Source: Thalia democratica
Lineage: Eukaryota
Direction: 5' to 3'
DNA: 64,000 bases
Assembly (NCBI GenBank): GCA_965202585.1
Contig: OZ241827.1
Coordinates: 54,374,001-54,438,000 of the forward strand
Under the pieces are notes generated by a model. The model did not search any database and had not been told where the DNA came from. It saw nothing but the letters and a program-made list of their open reading frames with translations. Of this stretch, positions 7,900 to 44,000 are shown piece after piece; position 1 is the stretch's first letter, and the number at the start of each line of letters is the position of its first letter. The translations under genes and the position numbers were made by a program.

Positions 7900-8490
7900 T
7901 ACAAAATTTACGGGAGCATGAAATTTAAACTTTATAAAACATACGTATATTTTCAGAAACTAAAACTCTTTACTTTTAAAACTCTGTCACAACTTTTTAA
8001 GTAATTGATATAGAATTTGTATCTTAAATTCAACCTAAGTTTTAATTCCAAAGTTAATTTTTGAGTTCTTCATAAGTACCATTTTAAACCGTTAAATTGA
8101 TTTTTTTTGTATATTTTTTGTACAAAAAAAATGTTTCTAAAATTATGGTTTATAATTAAATAGTAAAATTGGATTTAAGAAAACAGTAAACAATAAATAG
8201 TTTATATAGTGTTTTTTTATAATCTTGTTATTTTTTTAAAATCTTTAACTATTATACCGTAGTTTACGTAGCATATTAAGAACAGAATATAAATACCTTT
8301 TTTTTTTTTTGAAAATAATGAAACTATAACAAAGAAATTTTAACAGTATTTTTTAAATTTTTTTGATCGAAAAAAAAAAACGCTCAAAGTATTTTGTTTT
8401 AGGACTTGGTGAACGAAGAAGTTTTTAGTTAACGAGTCGCACACCACAGATACCTTTGAACTTATTTTCCAGGACAAGGCTAGTAAAGTA
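7900..8490 (-). repeat. Fifth copy (E) of the long decayed repeat R
   Basis: 8370-8480 (TCGCACACCACAGATACCTTTGAACTTATTTTCCAGGACAAG) is clearly homologous to 18678-18716 and to the reverse complement of 15457-15560. The leftward extent is less certain. Confidence 0.55.
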
Positions 8491-10311: not shown

Positions 10312-11163
10312 ATGAAACTTCGTTGCTTTGTGCGTTCGGTTTTCATCTACAGAATTAATCAGAAATTCGAAAGCTACGAATGGTTTAAGCATTCCATCAG
10401 ATTCGATCACACTGACAACTTGGTATGCATCTTGACCATGATATCACCTCCTGCTACTTGCACTGGAATAATCAGCAACCTGCTTACTATAGTCAATGGT
10501 AGTGGAGATCCGACATTCACCCTGGAGTTTCTGTTTGACAGATCTGAAATTACCACTTTAAGGGGGCCTTTCGACAAAAGAATAAACACAATCCGAAACA
10601 CTGTAGGTTTGAAATCCTTAGACGTTGTCCCTTACTACTTAAACGGTTCAACTGACAGGGTTGTTCAGGTCTCTGGCACTAACGACGCTATAGTTAGGAG
10701 TGTGTCTCAGATCATGAAGATATTGTCAGAAGAGCAAATCATCTGGCACTCAACTGATCCTTTCAATCCTCAAAAGCACGGACCTTACATCGGTTGCTTG
10801 GTGGATCAGAAGCTGAACAGTTTTGAAAGCCAGGAGAAGGAAATGATTGCGAAAATGGTTGGGGAAGAAATTGTTGCAATACAGACTGTGCAGTGCGGGC
10901 CTAGATGTCCTCCGGTTAAGCTAGCCATTCCTTTGATCGAAAATCCCGTGGAAACCCAACCGGATAACCTTCCTATGAGAGGTAGCATTCAGGTGGATGC
11001 TCCTGTGATTAAACATCCTCTCAGTCCTAAGGTGGCCAATCAGCAAGGCTCATCGATAAGCAACGACCGTTCTCAAGTGCTTGCTCCTCAAACCGACATA
11101 TTGAACGCTGCAAATAGAAATGTTGATGCGCTAGGTGGTGGTGATGGAATACCAAGAGCATAG
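10312..11163 (+). CDS. Divergent intronless KH-domain protein, hnRNP K/PCBP-like
   Basis: 283-aa ORF. TLEFLFDRSEITTLRGPFDKRINTIRNTVG...STDRVVQVSGTNDAIVRSVSQIMKILSEEQI...PFNP resembles hnRNP K KH2 (…STDRVVLIGG…ISESPIKGRAQPYDP). The GxxG loop is changed to GPFD and no KH3 is seen. Confidence 0.7.
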   Translation: MKLRCFVRSVFIYRINQKFESYEWFKHSIRFDHTDNLVCILTMISPPATCTGIISNLLTIVNGSGDPTFTLEFLFDRSEITTLRGPFDKRINTIRNTVGLKSLDVVPYYLNGSTDRVVQVSGTNDAIVRSVSQIMKILSEEQIIWHSTDPFNPQKHGPYIGCLVDQKLNSFESQEKEMIAKMVGEEIVAIQTVQCGPRCPPVKLAIPLIENPVETQPDNLPMRGSIQVDAPVIKHPLSPKVANQQGSSISNDRSQVLAPQTDILNAANRNVDALGGGDGIPRA

Positions 11164-14100: not shown

Positions 14101-15149
14101 TTAGGTTTTTACGAAATAAAAGAATAATAAAGTAAGATAACGTCTTAAATTTATTTAAATGATTTAATTAGTATTTTGTACTTAAAACTAAACTGATCAT
14201 TTAACGTGGTTTGTTCATTATTTTTAGATAACAATAAGTGCAGTAAAGTTTGTTTGGCCTAAAATAACTTTTATTACTTTTTAAAGTGTTTTAAGGTACC
14301 TTAAAAATATTTTAACTTAACTAAAAAATATAGTTTGCTTACTTAAAAGTTCTTATACGCCCTTAGTATTATTTGGCATTTTTATTATTAAAACGAGTCA
14401 TTTAGATTGTTTTTTACAAAAACATTTATACAAATTAAAATATCTACCTAAGTGACTTAACACGAGTAGTCCATTGTTTTATTAGAAATTAATTACTTTT
14501 TTTATTGCATTTAAATTTTCAAATCTAAACTGTTAAGTATTGTTTTATTAATTGGAATAAAAAGGAGGTTTTGATATCATAATTGTATTGCCAAAGAATC
14601 TCTGACCCCATTACAATCCTCATCGCAATACTTCACGAGATGGGCGATTTTTCTTATTGCTTACCCTTTTCAACTGACTCATTTGCTTTCCCCCTTTTTT
14701 TTTCATCGGTGTAATCAGTGTAAGGCATGCAGTCTAACATGTTTTTTTTTTGTCAAGCAAAAATACTGTTTTGTTTTAACACAAATTTTTATTAATCTAT
14801 CAACCAAAAAATAAACCATTTACTTATAAGACATATTTTAAAATAGTTTTTATATAATTTTTTTTTCTTATTTTGCTTTATTTTTTTAGATATTTTTGTT
14901 ATTAAAAAAGGTGTACTCGCCAACAGAAAAAAAAATGCTAAAAAGTCATCATACTTGCAAGCTTTACTCATGAATTGTTTTAGAAATATTAAATTTGTAA
15001 AAATAAATTATGAGAAAAGCTAACAAATGTTTAGGAAAGTCATTAAATTTATAAGAATGGCAGTCTTTCTTTGAACAAAATAAAACTTATTTGAAATTTA
15101 TCATCTTGCAGTTCACTTACAAATTGCTCACTTGGAATAACTTTGTTTT

Positions 15150-16250
15150 GATTTTTTCACCTTGAAATTGACGACTGGAAACTTGGAAAGCCACCTTGAA
15201 TTTCTTTGGGGATACCAGTATTTAGGTAGTGGTTTTAAGGAAAGAGCACTGAAGTTTAAAGAAAGTAGAAACCGTCTTTATTTGGGCTGTATTTTATGGA
15301 AATTGATAAGCACGAACTTAAAGTTAAACCAACTCTGTCAGCGATGTTAAAAAAAATCGTACCCGAAAAAAGCTCGTTCAAATTAGGTAAACTCAACAAG
15401 CTTGGTAGTACACTAGTTAATTTTAATGTAAAAAATAAAGACACACATGAATATTACTTGTCCTGGATAAGACATTAAAAGATATCCATGGTGTGCGCCT
15501 CGATAACCGTAAGGTTCTTCGTCCACGAGGTCCTAGGACCAAATATTTTGATCGTTTTTTTTATCGTTCAATAAACTATAGTGATGTTGTACGATGCCAA
15601 TACAGGGAGAATGTAAAAATGACCACTGAGATTTGTGAAAAAACAGTTATTCGTTGTGGTGACAACAAACTGTTTACTGTGAGCGTTTTTAAAAAATCGT
15701 TCAAAACCAAGTTTTCTTTTGATTTCACTAGAAACACTAAAAAGTTACCCAGCTAGTAAAAGGTTTAAACTCTCGTTTATACCACTTGATGCGCTAAAGA
15801 AAAAAATTAATAAAAATTTCCCTTGGTTTCGTCAATACAATGTCACCACGCACTTTCATAGTTGATAATAAAACGTTGCCTTTAAAACACAATTCAGCTA
15901 TATTTTATTTTTAAATTGTTTAATATTAAAAAATAAAACATATTATACTACTTTAGTTAATAAAAAAATTGTAGTTTATTAAAAAGAATTTTCTTAAGAA
16001 AATCCATTACTCTATTAGCAACTAACTACGTAACTAATATTTTAACAAGTTGAATAAAATATATTAAAAGCTAGTTATACTTTCAAAAATTTTGAGAAAA
16101 ATAATGTTCAACAATAAAAGTTTAATTCAAAAACGAGCTACTATTACATAATTTTTCAAGAGAGCTCAGTTGTAAGTAACTGTTTATTACACATTGTTAT
16201 TTTCTTAAAATAATTGAATTTTAATAACACTATAAAAAACATAGAAAAAC
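15150..16250 (+). repeat. Long decayed repeat R, copy A (left of TPMT copy 1), with pseudogene-like coding remnants
   Basis: Landmarks CTTGTCCTGGA..GGTGTGCG (about 15457-15498), ATACCACTTGATGCGCTAAAGA (about 15780) and TTATACTTTCAAAAATTTTGAGA (about 16075) recur at 17.5-18.7, 22.1-23.0 and 24.3-25.5 kb. Broken ORFs at 15296-15756. Confidence 0.65.
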
Positions 16251-16582
16251 TAAACTTGTAACAACACTGACCCAAATTTGCACTAGTAAAACAGAAAAAA
16301 AAAATTTTCAGAGCAAATAATCAAAAATAGTTTTAGCGTAAAAACTCTAAAAAATAAATGATGGGTTGTAATAAATGTAGTTCTGGTTATAGATTTGAAA
16401 AAAAAAAAAACTTATTTTTTGAAATTATTAACATGAAGTAAAAACTTTTGTTTTTGTTAGAAAAGTGTAACATAGATTTTAGGTTATATAAAAGTATCCC
16501 TCTTAATTTTTAAATAAAATTTTTAGAGTTATAAGCACAATAATTCTAATAAAAAAATTCACAGTTTGAAAGTTGCAACTAT

Positions 16583-17275
16583 TTAATATTTCAACTTTAG
16601 ACAGTACAGAGATTCCAAGAACCAATCGATGTCATACATCCGCTTGAACATTTCATTGGTGACGTCATAAAGCAATTCTATGTCGCACTTTGTCCCGTAC
16701 AAACCTCTTATCATTTGCGCGGGAACCGAAAGGCCCTGACCGCCTTCTAATTGGCTCTGGTCGTAACTGACGCTCGAAACCAGGTACACGGTGGTCTCGT
16801 CCATCAGACCTGTGATCGTGTCCGCGTACCTGCGTCTGTCTTCCGGGTTCACCGCGACCAGGGCGGCCCTGTCCCAAACCCCGTCAATTCTTCCCACCAG
16901 CTCGCGAGTGACTCGGAAAAAGTCCCCGTTGTGAATCGTAATTCTTCCATCCTCTGACTCGTAAGTGTCAAAGTCGGCGTTTTTAGCTTTGGAAAACTCG
17001 ATTTTGTTTTCAGCGAAAAACTCTTCGACCGCCTGCTTACTGTACTCTACACCGACGACTTTGTAGCCTTCATCGCTCATGTACTTCATATCGACTGTTT
17101 TGCCGCACATAGGGAACAGTATCGTGCCTTTTTCCTTGAACCTCGATTTGTGGGTTCGGAGCCAGCTGTTGACATCTGGTTCGTGCCAATTATAATCTCC
17201 CTCCTTATACTTCTTGTCCCATTTATCTAAGCTCCAACAGAAGCTTGATGGAACTTTGCTATTGTCATTACTCAT
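16583..17275 (-). CDS. TPMT: Thiopurine S-methyltransferase family protein, copy 1
   Basis: 230-aa intronless ORF with TPMT motifs FPMCGK, VVGVEYS, GDFF, WDRAALVAVNPEDRRRY. Confidence 0.92.
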   Translation of the reverse strand: MSNDNSKVPSSFCWSLDKWDKKYKEGDYNWHEPDVNSWLRTHKSRFKEKGTILFPMCGKTVDMKYMSDEGYKVVGVEYSKQAVEEFFAENKIEFSKAKNADFDTYESEDGRITIHNGDFFRVTRELVGRIDGVWDRAALVAVNPEDRRRYADTITGLMDETTVYLVSSVSYDQSQLEGGQGLSVPAQMIRGLYGTKCDIELLYDVTNEMFKRMYDIDWFLESLYCLKLKY

Positions 17276-17549
17276 ATTTCAAGTTGTTTTATAATCTAAA
17301 TGAATTTTTCTTTACTCGTTTTATTTCTGTATTATATGTGATGACTTTTTGATCTAGTTTGTATTTTGCTGTTGCTAAAACTTTGTTTTAAAATATACAT
17401 GAGAACATAAAAAATAAACAGGTATAGATTTTAAATGAAAAAAAAAGTAAAAAAAAACATAAATAATTGTAATAAAATCGAAACCAAAAGAAAAATCACT
17501 TTTAAGAGTCTTATTAAAATATAATTAGTATCAAAATAAGTTTAAAGAG

Positions 17550-18720
17550 TTTAATCAAAAATTATTTAAAACCTGATTCTCTTGAAAGATTTTGTTATAC
17601 TAGCTTGTCTATTGAAAGACTTTTTAATCATTGTTTATTGTGTCTAAAAACTTTCTAAAAGTATAAATAGTTTCTAATATTTTTTTTCAACATGTCAAAA
17701 TATTAGAAATTTAGTTGCTAGCAGAAAAAGTAAGTTTTCTAAAGTTAACTCTTCTAAATAAATTAAAAGTTTCTATTTACTTAAAAACTACAAAATAATT
17801 TACTTGTGAATATTTAGAAATTGACAGAGTAAAAACAAAAGCTCAAATGTGTACCAAAGTTACAAGCTTTATACTATATATAAATTTTCGTCGTGATGTC
17901 ATGTTGAGAATTCTAGAGGAAGTTGTAATAAACGTTTAAAACTTTAATTAATATGCCCTTTAACGCATCAAGTAATTTTTTTTTATACCCAGTCGAAACT
18001 AGCTGAGTTAGTAAAAACAATAGTTTTTTTATGTAGCTTTTGCAAGTCAATTGTGTTTGCTCGAGATAAGTTCTAAATGTAAACGTTTAGAGATGTTGAG
18101 AATTTGATAACAATGAGTCCAACGTGTAGGATTAAACAGCTAGCATTATACTACTTGTGTTCATGTTTTAAAAAGTTTTGGCTGCTTTAACTAATAAAAA
18201 CTATATTTACCAGGTCTTATTTTCTTGTTGACTCTAAACCCTTTACGGTTAGAATCATCACTACTGTTTTGATTTAAGTTGTAAAGATAGTGATTTAGTC
18301 TACTGTCTTTAATTTAGTTTACTATTAATTTTTAATATTAGTTAAGTGTTGTTTATTTATAGTCAAACTTAAATTATTTTTTTTATTGCATGTAAAAAGT
18401 AGTCTCATTAAAGTGTTGGAACAACAGTTTTCATAACTGTTTAGCTCTAGATCTGGCTAATGTCTTTAGTACGAGTAAGAAATTATCTTCAGCAGAACAA
18501 TCGAACATCGGAGCGTCCAATGCAAAAGTGTTTGTTAAGAAATGTGTTGTTTAAATATCACGACTAGCTTCGGTTTTGATTTTTATTAAAGGTTGTAACA
18601 CAAGTTTTTTGTTAAACTAAGGTATTCATTGAATAGTTATGAAACTTAGTAACCAATACTTGATTAAAATTTTCTGTCGCACACCACGGATACCTTTTAA
18701 CTTCTTGTCCAGGACATAAA
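17550..18720 (-). repeat. Long decayed repeat R, copy B (inverted relative to A)
   Basis: The reverse complement matches copy A landmarks at 17575-17610, 17955-18006 and 18678-18716. It aligns directly with 24500-24960. Confidence 0.65.
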
Positions 18721-21700
18721 AAGTTATTTGGAGCACTTAAGCTTAAACAATAGCTTGTATAGCTATTATAAAATTTAGTTTAGCTCGTTAAAAGTTTTAA
18801 AGTTTTATTGAATGTAACGTATTTATATAAATTTATGGCAAAAAATTTGTCCAAACAAAACTTAAAACAAATATCTTTTAAATGTCAAACTTATTTTTTT
18901 AATTTGAAATATAGCAATTATGTGCTAAAAATACTTTTATAGTCAATAAAATGTCTTTAAACGATTAAAGTATATGTTTATTATAAAAACTAAAAACTTG
19001 TTTCAATAGAGTTTAAAAAGTCTGAACAATTTTTAAAACTCATTTAAAAATTAGTAAAAATGTTTTTTTTAAATGATTTTTCATAAAAAATTTAACTTTA
19101 ATTACTTTTGTAAAATATATTCCCAAGTAGTATCTTAGCGGCTTTTGCTGTAAAATTCTGAATTTATTTTTAGGCATACTTATTAATAATTAGATTTTAC
19201 TTCTTAAAAAGTTGTTTATTTCTTCAAAAGACATATAAAAATATTAACCTCACAAAGCATATGCGTGATTGAAATATATTTAAACTAAAAATTGTTAAGA
19301 TACTACAAGCTCTTGAGTAAAAAAAGCTATACAACATATTTGAGTTTTGACTACTTTGTAAATGTAATTCAGACAAAGAGGTTTTTTTTGATTTAATATA
19401 GACAAAACCTAAAATATAGAACGTACAAACATTTTTAAGTTAATACGGTTGAAGTTTGCTACTTCATTTTTAAAACATTTTATCATAATATAATTTAAAA
19501 AAAACTTTAAAATTACTCAACAGCTAAGTTTTTATTTAAAAAAATTAGATAAAATGTTTAAAACATTTTTGGAAGAGTTTAGTGAGCAATACTAAATATG
19601 TTGTAATTAACTAATAGGAAAAAAAAATATTGTTTTAAGTTTTCAAAAATTTTAACAAAAGATTTTTCACTGACGCGCTAAACAACAAAAAAAATATTTA
19701 AGGTTTTAGTACATTTTTTACTACGTTTTCTACTAAGAAAATTAGTAGTTCATTTCATAAGTAATCTTTTTTTTAAACTTCATTAATTATTTCAAATTTT
19801 TCCAGGTGAATTTTCGGTTTTCAATCTTATGCTGCTAGCTCTTTTGTATAAAGCAATGATAGAAAATTTATAACGCTTAAATAAAAAAACGCTAAAAAAC
19901 AAACATTATATAGAACGTAAGACTAAGTAAAAAAGTGTTTTCAAAATATCTAATAGAGTTTTAACTAAAAAATGACCTTTTTGTCGTATTTTTTTTTGCA
20001 TAGGAAATTAATTAAAAAATTAAACAAATCGGTTTAACAACTATACAAAGTTTTATATTCCTGAAATTGTAATAACACATTTAAAAATATCTTTTTTTTA
20101 AAGTTTTTAAGCATTTTAATTAATCACAAAAAATAACTAAAATAAAAGAATTTACCACCAATGATTTAGTTGTTTTACTTGCTACATACATTTTAATAGT
20201 TTCAACTAAATTTTTAAGGCAATTTTAGTGTGCTGTTTATTGTCTTAAAGCAACACAAATTATGACTTGTAGTTACGGTTAAAAAGAAAGTTGACATTTT
20301 TCTTATAAACGGCTAACTATATAACACGATACAAGTGTAAATGGTTTTGAATAAAAAATAAACATTCATTGTAATATTTACTTATAACATAAAAAGCGAA
20401 TTATAAATTAGAAAAAAAGTTGACATAACTAATAAATTAAAGCCTCTGGCATAAGTGAAAGAAGTTTAACAAATACAAAAGATTGTTTTTCAATTTTTGC
20501 AAAAGGGCCGTTTATAAATATGTTTGGAAACCTTGTTTTAGATAGTTCGAAAGTTATATACTTTCGATATTTTTACTAGTTTTAAAATTAAATTGGTCTT
20601 AGTATGCTTTTTTAATTTCAATTTTATTTGTTAATTATTTTAAGTTTAGTTAATCTTGATTTGAAGTTAATTTTACTCAATTGTGACACATATAGTTTGA
20701 AAAACTTTTACTTAAAATTATTAAGTCTAAAACAAGTAAAGTAAACTAAAATACACAACAAAACAACAAATCATAATATAGATTGTTTTAGACTTAATAA
20801 TTACAAATATTCATATAGCTTTATAACAGTCGGATTTAATATTAAGTATTTTACCTATCATTAACTATTATCTTTAGAAATTATTTTATTTTAATGAAAA
20901 ACATGTATACACCCACTTTATTCTATGCTTCTATTCTTTCATTACAGTAATTATTTTTTTACAGAACCCAGTTCAAGTGTGTTGATTCGTTAACACATAG
21001 AAACATATGTTGGTATAATAAAAGAAGATTACTGTACAATTTGTTTTTATTTATATTCCATGAAGTTATTTAACTAGGATCTTTTGTTAGCAATCGATTA
21101 AACTTATAATTTGAACAGTTATATTAAATATATCAACTGATTATATTTCACAATTTCAACATTTTTACTAGTTTTAGTTTTGTTCGATTAAAACGTGTTT
21201 GTAAAAAAAAGGAAAGTTTAATTGTAACGTCTATATAATAACTTGCGAAATAAAATAGACACAATCTAAACCAATAATAACTAAAAAACTATTATTTTAT
21301 TACATTGTATACTATTAAAGATAAACATATAAAAATATGAATTTTAAATTAAAAGTATAAATGAACAAATTACTACTTGTTTGAGATTGATTTTTTCATT
21401 AGTAGGTTTAGTATTTCTTTTATTAACTTTTCATTAAAGTTTTTAGTTTATATATGGAAATTTTATGCAATAACCTTTCTTAAAAATAAAACAGGAAGCT
21501 AATTGTATTTTTTTCTAAAGAGGTTATTAGATAACTTAGCTAGTGCCGCAAATAATATTTTCAATTAAGTTCTCAGTAGTTGAAACACAACAGCATAAAA
21601 GTAAATTATAAACTTTTATTATTGTTATAAACGTTTTTTTTTAATGAAATAATAAATTCCAAATGGGATTGCTACTTAGATAAAAATACGTTCTTGTTTT

Positions 21701-22139
21701 CTTTAAGTTAATAAATCTAACAAAATAGCTTTTAAAATAAAATTTTTATTTATTTTCAACTTAAATCGTGGTTGATTAATAAACAGTAAGCTGTTTTATA
21801 ATGACGTAGAATAAAAACATGATATTTTTAAAGACTTTTTTTAAGTCAAATGTTTCCCAAGTTTCCTTTAAAATGCAAAAATAAATCTTTTCGCAAAACA
21901 GTTGACTCTTTACTAGTGTAAATGAAATAAAAAATGTTTATAAAGTTAAAAAAATTCTTTTAATTAGTAATAATAATTAGTAAAACGTTACAGATTTTAA
22001 AACATAAGCATATGTACTCTGAAAAGTATGTAAATTAAATTAGTTTTTTAAAGGGTATCTAAGTATTGTACAAAAATGAGCTTATATAATTGCAAATTGC
22101 TGATCATAGAATAAAACGAATCAGCAAAAGTTTAAACCG

Positions 22140-23050
22140 ATAGCACTCTGACACCTAATGAACTGTTTTGATCTGGATTGTTCTCAGAAAATAGTATCCA
22201 AATTATTTAATTAACACTTCTGCATAAAATTTTGCTGAAAAATATAAACAACATTTTAAAATATAACATAAATAAGCAATTATTTGCTGAAAAAAAATGC
22301 CTTATTCATATTAAAGCCACTAACCATATCTAGAACTAAATAAACATAAAATCTATTATACAAAAAACTTAGTGATATCACATATTACTATCAAAAATAA
22401 ACTTAAATAAAAACTTGACTATAAAGATAAATACGCTTTAACTATTATTTAAAATTAACAATAATAAAACTTATTTAAAAAGATAGAAGACCGAATTTTT
22501 ACAATTTTAATTAAAACAGAAATAATGATTTTTACTGTAAAGGGTTTAAAACCAACAAAAAATTTAGAATCAATAAAAAAAAATTTAATTTAAAACAATT
22601 ACAGTTTAAAAATATAGTTTTTAAAAAGCATTTCAATTAAAGTTTTTCACGTTTATTGCAATTTCCTTTAGTATTGTCGAAATGAGTCATGATGAAATTT
22701 CATGTATAGTGTAAAACGCGTAACTTCTATACACAGTTAAGCTTTTGTTATTACTTTGTTAATTTTTTAATATTCACAAGTGATTTTGCAGTTTTTTAGT
22801 AAATATATTTTTTTTATTTAGAAGAGTTTACTTTAGTAAAATTACATTTTCTGCTAGCAAATTAACAATTTATTTTAATAAATTGAAAAAATTTATTTAA
22901 AACAAGTTATACTTTCAAAAAATTTTGAGAACAAAAATAGTAAAAAATAAAAAGTCAAGCTGCTATAACAAAAATTTCTAACGGAACTCAGTTCTAAGTA
23001 ATTGTCAAATGCACTTTTCGTTATTTTCTAAAAATATTTATATTTTAGTA
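22140..23050 (+). repeat. Long decayed repeat R, copy C (left of TPMT copy 2)
   Basis: AGTTATACTTTCAAAAA..TTTTGAGA and CTCAGTT.TAAGTAA match 16072-16180. TTCTGCTAGCAA (about 22849) is the inverse of 17713/24522. GAACTGTTTTGATCTG (about 22160) is the inverse of about 25354. Confidence 0.6.
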
Positions 23051-23247
23051 AGACTATTAAAATTTGACGATTATATTATAATTAATAATGCTTTCTTTTA
23101 CTAATTTTTCTATTTAAAATCTATACACATTTTGCTACTTTTTGTCTGTTTTATGTATAATTCAAAACAGTATTTATGAAATAACAATATATCACATTTA
23201 TTCCTGAAATAAACTATTAAGTATTATTTTTTATTTTTTATAGAAAT

Positions 23248-23940
23248 ATGAGTAATGACAATAGCAAAGTTCCATCAAGCTTCTGTTGGAGCTTAGATAA
23301 ATGGGACAAGAAGTATAAGGAGGGAGATTATAGTTGGCACGAACCAGATGTCAACAGCTGGCTCCGAACCCACAAATTGAGGTTTAAGGAAAAAGGCACG
23401 ATACTGTTCCCAATGTGCGGCAAAACAGTCGATATGAAGTACATGAGCGATGAAGGCTACAAAGTCGTCGGTGTAGAGTACAGTAAGCAGGCGGTCGAAG
23501 ACTTTTTCGCTGAAAACAAAATCGAGTTTTCCAAAACTAAAAACGCCGACTTTGACACTTACGAGTCAGAGGATGGAAGAATTACGATTCACAACGGGGA
23601 TTTATTCCGAGTCACTCACGAGCTGGTGGGAAGAATTGACGGGGTTTGGGACAGGGCCGCCCTGGTCGCGGTGAACCCGGAAGACAGACGCAGGTACGCG
23701 GACACGATCACAGGTCTGATGGACGAGACCACCGTGTACCTGGTTTCGAGCGTCAGTTACGACCAGAGCCAATTAGAAAGCGGTCAGGGCCTTTCGGTTC
23801 CCGCGCAAATGATAAGAGGTTTGTACGGGACAAAGTGCGACATAGAATTGATTTATGACGTCACCAACGAAACGTTCAAGCGGATGTATGACATCGATTG
23901 GTTCTTGGAATCTCTGTACTGTCTAAAGTTGAAATATTAA
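23248..23940 (+). CDS. TPMT: Thiopurine S-methyltransferase family protein, copy 2
   Basis: 230-aa intronless ORF. By hand alignment it differs from copy 1 at 13 of 693 nt. Confidence 0.92.
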   Translation: MSNDNSKVPSSFCWSLDKWDKKYKEGDYSWHEPDVNSWLRTHKLRFKEKGTILFPMCGKTVDMKYMSDEGYKVVGVEYSKQAVEDFFAENKIEFSKTKNADFDTYESEDGRITIHNGDLFRVTHELVGRIDGVWDRAALVAVNPEDRRRYADTITGLMDETTVYLVSSVSYDQSQLESGQGLSVPAQMIRGLYGTKCDIELIYDVTNETFKRMYDIDWFLESLYCLKLKY

Positions 23941-24329
23941 ATAGTTGCAACTTTCAAACTGTGAATTTTTTTATTAGAATTATTGTGCTTATAGCTATCA
24001 AAATAATTATGGTTGAATGAAGGGTAACATGTTAAAGTAAATAATTTAAGGAGTAGGAATTGGGCTCAAACAAATGTTCATCTAAACTACAATTTATAAG
24101 AGATTTCTAACGAAAACTTATTTTCACATATCTTTTAATAAAAGATACTAATTGCAAGAAAAAATTATTTTTTTTTAAACTTATAAACAGATGTACAACT
24201 ATTACAGCCCATCATTTATTTTTTTATAGTTTATACGCTGAAATTACTTTACATTATCTTTTCTTTTTACTTAAGTATGTTTGGAGCAGTATCTTTACAG
24301 CTTTTATTTTACCGGATTTTAAAAGTTTT

Positions 24330-25480
24330 ATTAAACTTTAATTATTTTAAGAAAATAACTAAGAGTGCTACTAAAAATTAATTAAAACTGATCCTTTTCC
24401 TAAAATAATTAGTTAGTTTTTGAAACAGATTTTTATTATTAACTATTATCTTTCTTAAAATTATTGAAAGAATAAATAATCTTTATTGGTTTTATTCAAT
24501 TTGTTAACATGTAATTTATTTAGTTGCTAGCAGAATAAGTAAATTTTCTTACCTTTTCATAAACTGAAAGTTTTCTATTAACTTAAATATTATAAACCTT
24601 TTTTTAATTAATAGAAAAAGATTATAAAGCTAAAGCAAAAGGTAAATATGTACGAAGGATACAGTTTAAGTACTTACTATGAAAAAAGTGGTGGCGTTGT
24701 ATCGACTCGACAAAACTAAAGGAAATAAACTTGTTTCAAACGTAATTTTTTTTTATCAATTCGCTCTTTAGCGCATAAAGTGGTATAAACTCGAAAGGAG
24801 CTGAGCTAAAAAGTTGTTACTTTTCTATCTAGTTCTTGCAACTTAGTTGCGGTTGCTCGGGATAAGTTCTACCTCTAAACCTTTAGAGATATTTAGGAGC
24901 TGAATGCAGTGAATCCAACCACTTGTGTGGAATCACTTTATAAGTTAACGTTGTACTACTTGTGATAAGTTTAAAAATGAATACGTTTGTTTTAACTAAG
25001 GAACTATTTTTACTCGGTCTTAATTTCTGTCGATTTTAAGTTCTTTGAAGTTAGCACGATTGTTAGTTCAATTAAATTTGTAAGTATTTTGTTTTAATCT
25101 AGTATGTTCGATAATAAATTCAATAACTGCTGATTTAAAACCTTATTTAAAGTAATGCATTTTATATTTAAGTTTGAAAATTTTTTTATTGTGTAATATC
25201 TCACTCAGTTGTTTTTGTAATAGTTTTCATAATAATTTAGTTCTAGATATAGCTAATATATTTAAAGAAAAAGTTTCTTTAACAAACACTCCATTAAGCG
25301 TTTAATGAAGAATTGTTTGTTAAGGAATCCTTGGGCAGGTTTCAGAAAATTGTTCAGATCAAAACAGCTCTGAAGTTGTCAAGCCGAGTATCCATTGGTT
25401 TAAAAATTGTTGCTGATATGACGTTATAAAGACCTTTGCGGGTTTAAAAACTCAATGCAGTACAATACCGAGAAACACTC
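24330..25480 (-). repeat. Long decayed repeat R, copy D (inverted relative to C)
   Basis: CTTTAGCGCATAAAGTGGTATAAAC (about 24766) is the inverse of about 15776-15800. TTGCTCGGGATAAGTTCT matches about 18058. AGTTGCTAGCAGAA matches 17713. Confidence 0.65.
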
Positions 25481-26343
25481 TTGAAAATATTTCAAAACAT
25501 TATTTTTAATAAGTACTTATTTGTATGTATCAAAACCTATTACAATTTAAAAAAATTAGGCCAATTCTATATAATTTTGTTAACTAATATTATTTCATTT
25601 ACACCAGAGAAAAGTTTTTTTTTGCCAAAATGGTATTAAAAAACTGTGCTTAAATTTCTAAAAGCTATTTTGTTATATATATTAACCTATTCAAATAAAA
25701 AATTAAGAATTTGGTACAAATAATCTATTACGTTTACAAAAGTCTCTTATACTAATAGCAACTTTTTAATTATATTACAATAACAAAAAAGATATATTGC
25801 TAATGGTCACATGACTATTCAAATTTATACAGATCAACTTTTTTAAATAAAAAGTCTTATAAAAAATACTGCTTAACAGCTCACAAAATAATTTAAATTT
25901 GAAAAGATAAGAGAACGATTTTGTAGGTTTAGTAAAAAAAATTATAAAAGTAAAAAACATTGACAGAGCTCAGTTGAAGTGTGTTAATCCCATAACACAC
26001 AAAAACATATATCAGTGTTATAAAAGAAGGATACTGAATTATATCTATTTTTATGTATTCCAAAAACCTATTATGTTTGTATATATATTTTACTGTGATA
26101 AAATTATTAATTTTTAATGTCTAAGCATTTAGTCGGCAAGAAATATTTATCAGAACAAATATTTTGAGGGTCAAACTTGTTAGAAAAAGAAGTATTTGCA
26201 GGCCGTGTAACTATTAAATTCATACTATAAAAAAATTAAACATGTTATCAAAGCAAGTTGTACTGGAATTTTTATTTACTAGACATTTATGTGCATTAAA
26301 AATTAAATTAATAGTAAATTTTAAATTACTTGTTTTTATTAAT

Positions 26344-26730
26344 GAGGGTTGCCACTTGTTTTTCAAAAATTTTTTAAGGTTTTCAAAATTTCTTCCAGGT
26401 TTTTAAAAGTACACATTTTTGGGTCTATTTATTGTTTAAAGTTAAGTCTAAGGTAAGAAACTGTGTTATATAGTATAAAAACATTGAAAAGATAACATAA
26501 AGCTACTTTAAATATGTTTAAAAAAAAAAAATTCGATGATGACAAATTTTTTTTATTTATTTGATAGATTTTTTGGGTCATCGAAATTTTACTTCTGAAC
26601 ATCTGAAAATTGTTAAAATTCCAGGTTTTTCCAGGTTTTTTTTTTCAAAATTTCTCATTTTCCAGGTTATTTTTGCCTAAATTGTCGAATTCCAGGTTTT
26701 TCAAGGTTTCCAAGTAAAGTGGCAACCCTG
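26344..26730. mobile_element. 387-bp MITE, (C/G)AGGGTTGCCACTT TIR, 6-bp TSD ATTAAT
   Basis: TIRs at 26344 and ending 26730. ATTAAT on both flanks. TTCCAGGTTTTT subterminal repeats. Homologous to 27685-28071. Confidence 0.8.
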
Positions 26731-27684
26731 ATTAATTAAACCAAGTTGTTTTACAGCTAAGGCATTTGTCGCGAGCTAGATATATTTCTTTTCTGCGAGC
26801 CGAATCCGGCCCACCCCCAGATCAACTTGATAAAAAATTCAAACTGCTGAAAAGTCAATGAAGCTTTTTGCTTATAATAGTGGAATAGCATTATCAGAAC
26901 TAAAATAAAGCTGTCTTTAGCAGACTGTGCAAAAATAACCTGGTAAAAGTTGATTTGTTCATTTTTTGGTTGTTTTCACTTTATTAATTTGATCTTTAAG
27001 TTTTACTATTTTAAGCTTAAAAAAACATAAGTCAGTTATTCGAAGAAAAAACAAAATTGTTCTCAAAATAAATTATTTAAAGGTAGGCTTACATAAACTT
27101 AATTACTATAAAACTCGTTTTATTTCGTACTAAGTACTTCTGTCAAACAAATAAACACTTTAACAATATTTCTATGCTAATGTAGACGGCAATTTACTAC
27201 TTTTGGGAATGATTATGTTCTACTTTTAACAGCTAAACATAAAAATCTTATTTAATAGTATCAAATGTTAAACGACATTCTATTAGCAATACAGCAGTTG
27301 TTTTTTATTAAGTTTTGGTGATATAAGTAAGAAAAAAATCAACGTGTACGCGACCTAATTTTCTTTGTTAGTGAACAACAGTAGCTAAACGCCAGTTAGT
27401 TGGCTTTATATACTTAGAGATAACTCATCTCTTTTTTAATTTGTGCTAACTTTTAGGTTGCCTTAGTACTAACACATAGAAGTAACTTTGCACTTTGAAA
27501 ATTAACTTTCAACGAAGAAGGTTTCAATGCTGAAGCAAAGCATATTTTTCAATTATATATTTTATATTAGCGTTAAATCAATACTAGCTTGGATTAAAAA
27601 GTATATACACTATACGAGGTTTTTAAACTCTCTAAATATATAGGTGTTTAAAACAAAGTTGAAAACAATTGGAAAACTAAAAAA

Positions 27685-28071
27685 CAGGGTTGCCAAATGC
27701 TTATAGCAGTTTTTCTCTAGGTATTCAAAATTTCCTCCAGATTTTAAAAAATACACATTTTAGGGTCTTTTTTAAGTCTAAAATTAAGCTTAAGGTACAA
27801 AATAGTATAAAAACAGTGAAAAGATACTATAAAGCTACTTTAAACGCGTTATAAAAAAATGTTTGATGATGACAAAAATGTTTTGTTTATATGATAGATT
27901 TTTTGAGTCAAACCGAAATTTTACTACTAAACATGTGAAAATTCCAGGTTTTTCCAGGTTTCAGTTGTGACAATCCAGGTGTTTTTTCAAAATTTCTCAA
28001 ATTCCAGGTTTTTTAGCCTAAGTTGTTAAATTCAAGGCTTTTCCAGGTTTCAAGGTTTTTTAGCAACCCTG
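27685..28071. mobile_element. 387-bp MITE, second full copy, flanked by AAAAAA
   Basis: CAGGGTTGCCA…TAGCAACCCTG. Same length and internal sequence blocks as 26344-26730. A6 on both sides. Confidence 0.8.
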
Positions 28072-28244
28072 AAAAAACCTGCAGTGTCTTTACAAGCTCA
28101 TTTAAAAATAATATTTAGTTTATATTTAAATGATTCTTTAAGTTTTACTTCAGTAAATTTTACTACATAATAATGGGCTAAAACTCAGAAAGCATTATTA
28201 AATTTTTAAAATTCCAAAAAAGTTTTATACTTTTTATCTACTTA

Positions 28245-41046: not shown

Positions 41047-44000
41047 TTATTGACTTTGGTCGCTGTAAAAATCGGAAGTGGAAACTTCACCTTTGCAGGG
41101 GTTGGCGGGTATTTTGGGGTGGTTTCTGTCGGAAGCCAGTTTGTGCGCTTGGTTGTCATGACGCGGCGTTTGGAAGGTAGTGAACTGCGGAGGATCTGTT
41201 GCCATGCAATACGACAGTTATACGGTTATTATGACAATTTAAATGCAAACTGACAACTTGACAGTTAGTATGTGAGAAATTTTTCACGAATGTTAGCCTT
41301 GTTGGTAAGCTAACACCAAAAACATAAACTAAAACTATATAAAATGTTTGTTTCAAAAAGTTATATTATACTGATTTTCTGTAATGAAACAGCAATTGGT
41401 TTCTGTTGTTAAAGTTTACTTAAAAAAGCCATGCAAACAACTTTAATGACGTAAAAAGATATGCTGCGTTGCATATTTGAATTCATACTGCAATTAAAAC
41501 ATGAAATAAATCACATAAGTTATTTTTAATTAACTCGATGTTCGTAATGAATTATAACTTAATCTTTGAAACTGACCGGGAAACTCTTCGGCCTTCGCTT
41601 GGTTTTTCTCGTCGAAATTCTTGTAAAAGTTATGCTTCGCCTCGCCCCCCTTGAACGAACTCAGCGACGGCTTCGACCTCCCCACCTGTTGCTGATGGTA
41701 ACCGTGGTGACTCCCCGGCTTCTGGAACTGCCAGCAGCTGGAAGCCGTGCTGTTGTGGCCGCTGTGCACCGAAACGGCGCTCTGTTGGGGCGACACCGCC
41801 CTGGCAACGAACTTCTCGTCCAACCCGGCTATCCTCCTCACGACTCCCGCGTCTTCCACGTTGGAGGAAACGCCCGCCGACATGCCACTGTCGCCCGTGT
41901 GGTTGTTGTACGACGTCACACTGAAGTTGGTCGCGCTCCCGTGGTTGCGGCGGTTTCTATGGTAACCCTGCTGGTTGCCGAGCGAGGAGGTATCCAGGAG
42001 GGGGTCGGTGTCGTTGGGGTTCTTCGCTTCCTCTACCGTGGGCAGAACAAACTGCTGCTGGTTGCCGCGGTGGTGAAAGTGCTGGTTGCTTGTAGGGGGG
42101 AGTCCCACTTGAGAAACGGAAGTCATGTCGAAGGACTCGTCGCCGGAAGAAGCGTATTGGTCGTCGGCTACACGGCGTTCGTCGTAGTCTGTCAAGTTTA
42201 AACTTTTCATTGACTTTTTGTTTTAGCCTCTTAAGGATTAGCTGCTTTTAACTTTAACATACTTAATACGTTTTTGGTAGCGAAAAATTCTTTTAAACGC
42301 AGTTAATACTTTTTTTCAAATAAAACAGTTTTTATTTATTTATAAGTACAAGCTCGTTTTTTACAAATAAATGCTTTTATCATAGTGCACGAGAAGACAT
42401 CAACTACTTTTAGAAAAGCATCTTTATTTTTCAAACAGAATTCAAAAACCCACCTAATGTTTGATTGTAAGCTTCTCTGTGAACCACGTTTTGGTTGCAA
42501 GTGTTATCAACATTGTTCAGCATCAATGGTTGTTTTATTTGTCTGTTTCAATGTTTTTTTATCATGTTATACACTTGTATCAATTTTTTTCTTAAGTTAT
42601 GAGTTAGTATTAGTCATAAATCAATTTAATGTTTAATAGTGATTGATCGCGGTTTAAGTGATTTGTCATTGTTTTACAAGTGCCTCGAACTATACGTTAG
42701 TTTAATAAATGTTTTATGCAACTTATCTTTTTATATATAGCAGATAACTTTAAAGTAAAAAAACAAAATAATTTTCTATTCGAAAAGAAACAGTTCATCT
42801 TATAATTTCAGTTATGGTATTTTTTACTTAGTATATCTTCTAACGTATTAAATATTATAATCTTACAATTCAAAATAATTAACTTTTTGCCTTTTTTGAA
42901 AAGATAAAAAAATTGTTGATAAATTTTTACAAATTTATTTTAGTAATAGTACACATAAAACCTTGTAAAAAGAGTACAGCCAATAACAAAGTTTTCGAAG
43001 TTTTGTGCATAAATACTAGCAAAATCTAAATGTAAATTTTAATGACTTAAACTATTTTAAACTGTTTGGTGTAGTTAGCTCAACTTATGTGCTAATAGAA
43101 AAGTTTTAAAAATAGTGTTTTCGATAGAAGGGCATAGTAGAATCAATAAAACTTAAAAAAAAAATTTAAAAAGTTACTTGAAGGTAAAAAAAATATTTAT
43201 CAAAATGCTACATAAGTTTTGTTTCAAGGTTTTTTAACAACTACTCATCATATCATAAATCTAAAAAATATCAGAAACAAGTCTTCCAACCTGTGTTGCA
43301 TTGCAGGGGGCTCGGTGAGCGTTGTCATGGCAACGTTCGTGTTGGGCGGGTTGGAGTAGTTACTAAGGAGCGTGGATGTGGAGTTGTGTCTGTGGATCTG
43401 TGAGATGTCCCGCATCTTGTTCCTTGGAACTGAGGAACCCGTCAGGCTCATCTCACTGTTTATAATAAATATTACGAATTTTAAATTTCAACTTTACAAC
43501 AAAATTGTCTGTATGGTATATAATAGTTTTGTTTTTGAATTTTCTTGATATATTTTTTAACACTACACAGAACTTAATGTTTGTATTTTAGAGAATTTTT
43601 AGTAATGTTTTTCTCAAAATAGAAACAACTTAAAATGATGGAAATATTTCAAATTGTAGTGCACCCGTCACGTTCATTTCACTGCTCGTAAATACTTTGA
43701 TTAACATTTCGATATTTTTAATTCTAGTATAAAATTGTTTGTATGGTATAAAATAGTTTTACTTTTGAGAACTTTTTTTATATCACACAAAACTCTATTC
43801 TTATACTTTTAGAGCTTTTTAAGTAATTTGAAAATATATAATTCATAAAATATGTAGTTAACAATAACATTTAAAATCATTAGTTGTTGTCTTATGGATA
43901 AAGAATATTTAAGAAGAAACAAACTTGTTCTGGTTTCTGCTTCTCAGTGAGTGCTGGGGGCTGGTAGTCTGCTGTTGTTCGTAGTGGTCAGCGTGAGTTG

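Follow-up and report, generated by a model that had tools for sequence, protein, structure and literature searches.

Within the window, i.e., the whole stretch of 64,000 nucleotides of Thalia democratica DNA that was analysed, two thiopurine-methyltransferase (TPMT) genes each lie between inverted copies of a segment designated R. The features are given below by position in the window, with the strand where one applies.

15455-15590, (-): high-copy short repeat of ~135 nt, inserted left of A, outside R
15775-16238, (+): R copy A, situated 3' of TPMT1, truncated to ~0.46 kb and sister to D (BLAST ends, quartet test)
16239-17499, (-): central unit 1, i.e., TPMT1 with its proximal flanks on the 3' and 5' sides, 1261 nt enclosed by the R inner ends
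16519-17280: left homogenised core, 98% identical to the reverse complement of 23243-24004
16583-17275, (-): TPMT1, intact intronless ORF of 230 aa (ORF list; Pfam PF05724, E 3e-48)
17500-18546, (-): R copy B, situated 5' of TPMT1, ~1.05 kb long and sister to C (BLAST ends, quartet test)
18547-21690: palindrome spacer, unique sequence plus a young high-copy MITE of ~420 nt
18675-18722, (+): 47-nt terminal fragment of the ~135-nt repeat, just outside B, where contigs have loose ends
~20716-21136: the spacer MITE, ~420 nt, young and high-copy, seen as a depth spike in the contig tiling
21691-23063, (+): R copy C, situated 5' of TPMT2, ~1.37 kb long (collinear match chain to D)
23064-24315, (+): central unit 2, 1252 nt
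23243-24004: right homogenised core, the 98% identical counterpart of 16519-17280
23248-23940, (+): TPMT2, intact intronless ORF of 230 aa (ORF list; Pfam PF05724)
24316-25702, (-): R copy D, situated 3' of TPMT2, ~1.39 kb long (collinear match chain)

TPMT1 and TPMT2 belong to the family PF05724, whose profile is matched over its full length (positions 3-216 of 218) at 164.6 and 159.4 bits, respectively, i.e., above the gathering cut-off of 26, and the closest solved structures for TPMT1 are those of mammalian TPMT (E 4e-39). The two ORFs differ at 13 nt and 9 aa. As described in an earlier reading of the sequence only, the two cores, of 762 nt each, stand in opposite orientation, and they are 98% identical; the proximal flanks of central unit 1 match solely their inverted counterparts in central unit 2. 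An exact-sequence look-up found neither protein in the collection. Other TPMT paralogues exist in the genome, namely three in tandem on C10 as well as on C9 and C8, all of them intronless and the protein being of animal type; none of these carries R or is bracketed by inverted repeats. The spacer MITE, with inverted ends of ~65 nt, gave more than 3500 first-look candidates in the genome at 92-94% identity, and neither the Rfam nor the tRNA scan gave a hit in the window.

The four flanking segments had previously been described as homologous, about 0.9-1.2 kb long and pointing the same end inward. Their homology is confirmed by BLAST, i.e., A to the reverse complement of B at 70.6% (E 9e-31), A to C at 72%, B to D at 65.6% over 1090 nt (E 4e-48) and C to the reverse complement of D at 71.7%, but the lengths are not, with arms of approximately 0.46, 1.05, 1.37 and 1.39 kb. 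The same R end does face the TPMT gene in all four copies, where the inner ends (16238, 17500, 23063, and 24316) coincide within 1 nt; a global-alignment identity test at this boundary, with a high null of 72 +/- 6%, supports the BLAST end points short of proving them. The outer limits, on the other hand, had to be redrawn. Segment A had been started at 15150, a position from which the sequence up to 15775 lies outside R and corresponds to a fragment of unrelated multi-copy sequence (14896-15730 matches such sequence on another chromosome) with the ~135-nt repeat inserted, while C and D, formerly placed at 22.14-23.05 kb and 24.33-25.48 kb, both reach further out. Compared with B and D, copy C has lost an internal stretch, and copy B is cut at 18546, a point past which the sequence of an orthologous contig, L023, runs on. 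The common outer terminus once suspected for A and B is the 47-nt piece at 18675-18722, for which the genome holds 436 candidates at 94-100% identity; as such, the copies of the ~135-nt repeat left of A and outside B produce a false shared outer end.

At a larger scale, a continuous inverted alignment links 15775-17963 to 24790-22621, with 77% identity over 2285 nt, and extends to 18494/22285, which delineates a palindrome of two inverted arms, each with a TPMT gene, around a spacer of ~3-3.7 kb. In a quartet test on 420 common R columns, 35 sites favour AD|BC, against 6 for AC|BD and 3 for AB|CD, and the R identities amount to 72% for A-D and 74% for B-C, with 63-67% for the remaining pairs. 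The choice between the groupings A+D/B+C and A+C/B+D thus falls on the former, from which it follows that an older R>TPMT<R unit was subsequently duplicated in its entirety and in inverted orientation, as the sequence-only reading had surmised. At the A/D and B/C level, the pairs are also what that reading had opposed to its mobile cassette, i.e., the outcome of a palindromic duplication unrelated to transposition.

The locus is probably a small, old and locus-bound palindrome derived from two nested rounds of inverted duplication, with no sign of transposition. In the first round, at least 1.4 kb beside an intronless TPMT gene would have been copied, inverted, onto the other side of the gene, giving R> 1.25-kb TPMT unit <R; from the geometry, the likeliest route would be fold-back or template-switch repair with the gene as the unique loop. 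A remnant of a second inverted TPMT gene or 5' flank, which would favour a tail-to-tail pair with one copy deleted, was sought between the gene and the 3' arm; local alignment scores there equalled those of shuffled controls, and since no second inverted gene copy is left, the mechanism of this round is unreadable from the sequence. In the second round, ~2.5-2.8 kb of the unit was copied, inverted, ~3 kb away, yielding two head-to-head genes within A-TPMT1-B and C-TPMT2-D, of which the latter is the fuller copy. Afterwards, the non-coding flanks decayed to 64-77% identity, whereas the two ORFs have been repeatedly homogenised by gene conversion, being 98% identical and nearer to each other than to orthologues, and the palindrome centre is structurally unstable among related genomes.

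The orthologues considered are marine-metagenome contigs, among them L023, L024, and L025. Flank identity to the orthologous contigs is 91.5% on the B side, 93.9% on the C side and 88.9% on the D side, and since the paralogous flanks within the locus are 64-75% identical vs. 89-94% to orthologues, the duplication is older than that species split. The opposite pattern, where paralogues are more alike than orthologues, is confined to the ORFs, with 13 nt differences between TPMT1 and TPMT2 (1.9%) but 29 between TPMT1 and L023 and 32 between TPMT2 and L023 (4.2-4.6%). This greater closeness of the paralogues indicates, in a comparison with one orthologous contig (L023), concerted evolution of the two ORFs by gene conversion, the tract of which approximates the extent of the ORF (left core 16519-17280 vs. 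the TPMT1 ORF). In a taxon further removed, represented by L024 and L025, R likewise lies 3' of a gene of the TPMT1 type. In L023, the B side lies in opposite orientation and TPMT1 is cut at codon 15, so that the palindrome centre is structurally unstable; the outermost 200 nt of this contig, searched against the genome, gave no match. A JGI metagenome scan for further orthologous loci returned distant relatives only, at 28-40% identity, and among the RNA runs on record none contained the locus.

The flanked genes had been interpreted as an old long-TIR cassette, possibly mobile or invertible. Invertibility finds some support in L023, in which the B/TPMT1 side is flipped, whereas mobility does not, given a single locus, no TSD and no transposase. 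A relic of a long-TIR DNA transposon of the Pack-MULE or Foldback type, having captured a whole TPMT gene and then undergone local transposition or duplication, would account for R arms pointing the same end inward with sharp, identical inner boundaries and for a cargo that is a compact 1.25-kb intronless gene unit, in a genome where MITEs are plentiful. Against it, R occurs at this locus only: the search of the 802-Mb genome for other R-bounded cargoes, a heuristic one that recovered local copies at 66-72% identity, yielded just the four local copies with A, B, outer C and D as queries. A TSD search at the candidate outer-end pairs found nothing beyond chance, the longest direct matches of 5-7 nt being reached by 114-426 of 500 random pairs. 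No transposase-like ORF was found, the small ORFs in and around the arms being without Pfam match, and TRF over 15000-26200 detected five trivial arrays of ~2-3 units each in place of tandem subrepeats. The arms of the second copy (A 0.46 kb, B 1.05 kb) are asymmetric and stop at arbitrary breakpoints, unlike the equivalent, defined termini expected of an element, while the supposed common outer termini stem from a short repeat unrelated to R, and related taxa have inherited R beside TPMT at the corresponding locus. The transposon explanation is very unlikely overall and largely refuted for the second round; as the arms are only 64-72% identical, a very old TSD or terminal motif could have eroded, so that these negative tests weigh less for the first round than for the second. 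Copy number, TSD, quartet and orthologue tests together lead to a locus-bound nested inverted duplication instead of a transposon.

Alternatively, a perfect palindrome R><R could have broken centrally, the break being filled by a retrocopy of TPMT or a piece of DNA, in which case the gene would be an insertion and not a fold-back loop. The sharp R inner boundaries would suit such an event, as would the intronless state of all TPMT paralogues despite their animal-type protein, since the family may have spread as retrocopies; inspection of the central-unit junctions, though, revealed neither poly-A tract nor TSD, and no empty R><R site is known. The available data fit this scenario and the fold-back model alike; overall, it is quite improbable. 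That the inverted layout is an assembly artefact of the 98% identical cores can hardly be credited: assemblers can be misled by 762-nt repeats at this identity, but independent contigs, drawn from two studies, run through both 18546 and 21449 with 0-5 differences to B, spacer and C, and flanks at 64-77% are too diverged for collapse or mis-joining. Logan contigs that come from two studies and carry different organism labels cover 17251-18705, 18687-20745, and 21064-22300, so that what the assembly shows at 18546 and 21449 is real; these contigs break at the core boundaries and do not report the orientation of the 6-kb inter-core segment. Joints on opposite strands at 16519/17709 and 17762/22300 were rejected as inversions, being paralogous contigs placed at 85% likeness. 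Compared with nested inverted duplication, a more dynamic proposal is that of a palindromic hot spot recurrently breaking and still flipping, with R>TPMT<R, in the furthest version, as the final remnant of a Pack-type long-TIR element of animals that carried a whole gene. Though unlikely, it would, if true, mean that recombination between the 98% identical 762-nt inverted cores inverts the 6-kb segment with both promoters in living populations. On this view, one copy has already been inverted and truncated in a sister lineage.

Among known systems, the palindromes of the primate X and Y chromosomes comprise two inverted gene-bearing arms and a spacer, the gene copies being held similar by gene conversion and the arms being >=8 kb long and >99% identical throughout (PMC8327919, PMC8600007), and both spacer inversions and non-orthologous spacers have been reported for them (PMC8327919). 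The TPMT locus resembles them in its two inverted arms with an intact gene copy each, its spacer and its gene conversion, as well as in rearrangements that cluster in the spacer and the inner parts of the arms and in a spacer non-orthologous between relatives. It differs by arms of ~2.5-2.8 kb at 77% overall, short of the >=8 kb and >99% of the primate set, by homogenisation limited to the 762-nt coding core, and by an older inverted repeat internal to each arm; as such, it is a small, decayed analogue of the primate sex-chromosome palindromes. MULEs, for their part, are defined by a TSD of 9-11 bp and TIRs of 100-500 bp common within a family (PMC3310237, PMC5861414). Like Pack-MULEs, the locus has host-gene sequence enclosed by inverted repeats that measure at least a few hundred bp, whereas R shows neither a 9-11 bp TSD, nor a family or second locus with shared TIRs, and instead of a gene fragment the cargo is a complete gene that looks functional. 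Foldback elements, e.g., FB of Drosophila, have long TIRs made of tandem subrepeats; long inverted arms round a unique centre are found here too, but without tandem subrepeats and at a single locus, not as dispersed multiple copies. Fold-back priming and events of the DUP-TRP/INV-DUP type generate inverted duplications with a unique spacer, and the TPMT locus shares with such fold-back or template-switch duplications the succession of arm, unique loop and inverted arm, the arbitrary outer ends, the lack of TSD and the nesting at one locus, a mechanism suggested here by geometry, junction microhomology being no longer readable.

The outcome is chiefly a correction, in that a gene flanked by kilobase-long inverted repeats, in an animal genome rich in repeats, can mimic a transposon with gene cargo, and to specialists the locus is an ordinary inverted segmental duplication with gene conversion, with nothing surprising. 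It nonetheless provides a compact, clean example of gene conversion that, in a pair of inverted genes, stays within the coding core, an example of palindrome-centre instability in a marine animal, beyond the mammalian sex-chromosome cases, and one of an expanded intronless TPMT gene family. The TPMT ORFs are moreover GC-rich, with a GC3 of 0.61 amid flanks of 25% GC; GC-biased conversion was rejected as the source of this richness, the unconverted singleton paralogue on C9 having a GC3 of 0.70.

On sensitive self-BLAST of 13-28 kb, the locus is one inverted segmental duplication, where A-TPMT1-B, i.e., the first methyltransferase gene between two copies of the non-coding repeat R, is the reverse complement of C-TPMT2-D. 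A single long inverted alignment pairs 15775-17963 with 24790-22621 (77% over 2285 nt) and resumes at 18215-18494 against 22568-22285. The palindrome comprises the following elements.

15775-16238, R copy A, ~0.46 kb
16583-17275 (-), TPMT1, intact intronless ORF of 230 aa, full-length Pfam TPMT match (E 3e-48)
17500 (inner end) to 18546 (outer end), R copy B, ~1.05 kb
21691-23063, R copy C, ~1.37 kb, collinear chain with D
23248-23940 (+), TPMT2, intact intronless ORF of 230 aa, full-length Pfam TPMT match (E 1e-46)
24316-25702, R copy D, ~1.39 kb, collinear chain with C

By BLAST, A (15887-16238) aligns with the reverse complement of B (17852-17500) at 70.6% (E 9e-31) and with C in direct orientation at 72%; B (17500-18543) aligns directly with D (24317-25328) at 65.6% over 1090 nt (E 4e-48), and C with the reverse complement of D at 71.7%. 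The inner ends of R, namely 16238, 17500, 23063, and 24316, agree within 1 nt in four independent pairwise alignments and enclose central units, 1261 and 1252 nt long, both of which consist of a 3' proximal flank, the ORF and a 5' proximal flank, where the proximal flanks match solely their counterparts in the other unit. As proposed in the sequence-only reading, which had each TPMT bracketed by inward-facing repeats of ~1 kb, each gene lies between two inverted copies that turn the same end towards it, but the arms are unequal, from 0.46 to 1.39 kb. The opposite orientation of the TPMT cores is borne out: the 762-nt stretches 16519-17280 and 23243-24004 are inverted to each other at 98% identity, with the genes head to head and their 5' ends looking onto the intervening sequence.

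Respective to the order of events, 420 ungapped columns common to the four R copies were submitted to a quartet test, where identity was 72% for A-D and 74% for B-C, against 63-67% for the remaining four pairs. Informative sites favoured AD|BC (35 sites) over AC|BD (6) and AB|CD (3), so the R>TPMT<R unit came first and was then copied as a whole in inverted orientation; the suggested history of duplication and flip is supported. With arms of ~1.4 kb in C and D vs 0.46 and 1.05 kb in A and B, C-TPMT2-D looks like the fuller copy. The outer ends of A and B are arbitrary and non-equivalent, and A-TPMT1-B resembles a segmental duplicate broken at random points rather than an element with termini.

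The window, strongly AT-rich (GC ~25%), is part of a chromosome-scale contig in a genome of 802 Mb; ORFs at 10312-11163 (+; 283 aa) and 41530-42210 (-; 226 aa) have GC of 44% and 56%, above background, without Pfam match. The closest solved structures to the window TPMTs are mammalian TPMTs (E 4e-39), with the bacterial enzyme behind them (7e-23). The genome holds eight TPMT-like loci, including the two in the window, the others being as follows.

C10:29640270-29645067, three tandem paralogues, intact and intronless
C9:35534836-35535486, singleton paralogue, intact and intronless
C8:41477500-41478180, singleton paralogue, intact and intronless
C7:10812562-10812927, broken copy

The five intact intronless paralogues outside the window stand at 30-56% aa identity, indicating an expanded family, and GC3 across it ranges from 0.29 to 0.70.

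In the public collection, the closest proteins come from marine metagenome assemblies. One such contig, L023 (4380 nt), encodes a TPMT with 95% aa identity and is orthologous on both sides: the flank 5' of the gene matches C at 93.9% identity, the flank 3' of it matches the D side at 88.9%, and another stretch matches B at 91.5%. Since paralogous flanks compare at 64-75% identity only, the duplication predates the split from the L023 organism. Two further contigs, L024 and L025, carry a TPMT1-type gene (86% aa identity) with a 3' flank including R (75% to A vs 67% to D), and thus the association of R with TPMT was vertically inherited at the locus. The ORFs show the opposite pattern to the flanks and evolve in concert: only 13 nt separate TPMT1 from TPMT2 (nine nonsynonymous and four synonymous codons), whereas the L023 gene differs from them at 29 and 32 nt, respectively. 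As the paralogous ORFs are nearer than the orthologues and the effect is confined to the core, this pattern is the signature of gene conversion. In sequencing run X3, a core contig (16553-17280) is of TPMT1 type in its 5' two-thirds but shows TPMT2-type letters at 16650-16672; this mosaic hints at, rather than proves, ongoing exchange between the cores, a polymorphic conversion tract or a crossover being possible.

The relative is rearranged at the palindrome centre. In L023, the B orthologue lies direct and upstream of the C orthologue, i.e., in opposite orientation to the window, and is followed by the first 15 TPMT codons only, TPMT1 being cut there, then by a sharp join to the orthologue of 21449; the two sides of this junction (L023:1440-1600) map apart in the window genome, at 17224-17303 (-) and 21449-21535 (+), and a metagenome contig from run X4 starts exactly at 21449. 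The R-like sequence of L023 also runs on past 18546, where the B arm of the window ends, and no orthologue of that further sequence was found in the window genome. These differences therefore imply at least two rearrangements near the centre between genomes differing by ~9%: the L023 lineage may have inverted 17229-21448, or the ancestor may have been tandem, with the inversion arising on the way to the window. Similar behaviour is published for palindromes, in which spacers are frequently inverted or are non-orthologous (PMC8327919). Concerning the assembled layout, Logan contigs from runs X1 and X3, labelled as different organisms and studies, tile 17251-18705, 18687-20745, and 21064-22300 with 0-5 differences, which shows that both junctions, at 18546 and at 21449, are real; as these contigs end at the core boundaries, the support covers the junctions and not the orientation of the 6-kb inter-core segment. 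RNA runs containing the locus were looked for as well, and the records listed none.

The locus bears no hallmark of transposition, and the mobile long-TIR cassette envisaged from the sequence alone is not supported. Whole-genome DNA searches with A, B, outer C, and D, sensitive enough to regain the local copies at 66-72% identity, returned these four copies only; neither R nor any bracketing inverted repeat was found at the TPMT-like loci on C10, C9, C8, and C7. Direct repeats at candidate outer-end pairs reached 5-7 nt at best, a length that 114-426 of 500 random pairs also attained; tandem subrepeats are absent from the arms, and small ORFs in or near them lack a Pfam match. MULEs are defined by a TSD of 9-11 bp and TIRs of 100-500 bp common to a family (PMC3310237), whereas neither a TSD nor family-shared TIRs were found here, and the R-TPMT association at this single locus is vertically inherited. 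Instead, the R>gene<R unit would have formed when fold-back or template switching duplicated R in inverted orientation, the unique loop being the gene unit. Alternatively, a gene copy may have inserted into a pre-existing palindrome, or a tail-to-tail gene pair may have lost one copy, which a remnant of the inverted partner gene would have backed, but none survives. Palindromes that bear genes and undergo gene conversion are a kind of structure already known, to which the locus adds one more instance as a small, decayed analogue.

Other repeated sequences lie around the arms or elsewhere in the window, namely:

14896-15730, multi-copy sequence, left of the palindrome
15455-15590, high-copy repeat of ~135 nt, interrupting the former
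18675-18722, 47-nt terminal fragment of the ~135-nt repeat, just outside B
about 8359-8478, third copy of the ~135-nt repeat
~20716-21136, MITE of ~420 nt with ~65-nt inverted ends, in the spacer
25960-26062, partial copy of the MITE

The segment 15150-15775, initially assigned to A, is not R but falls largely to the multi-copy sequence and its inserted repeat. The former matches at 73-77% a sequence in several copies on contigs C6 (15.55-15.63 Mb) and C240, has GC above background and several ORFs of 60-87 aa, none matching Pfam, and is possibly an old repeat or else an exon belonging to a local gene family. The ~135-nt repeat, which has one sharp end and a run of A inside, is unrecognised by ARAGORN and Rfam and probably represents a young element resembling a SINE or a MITE; for its 47-nt fragment, a first look at the genome gave 436 candidates at 94-100% identity. 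A and B seemed to share outer ends because pieces of this repeat adjoin both. The spacer MITE, with >3500 first-look genome candidates at 92-94% identity and frequent nested or paired copies, is young and has no relation to R; it is probably the MITE mentioned in the sequence-only reading. Just right of the palindrome, a direct repeat of ~0.4 kb (26345-26731 and 27686-28072) is 74% identical, with a spacing of ~1.33 kb.
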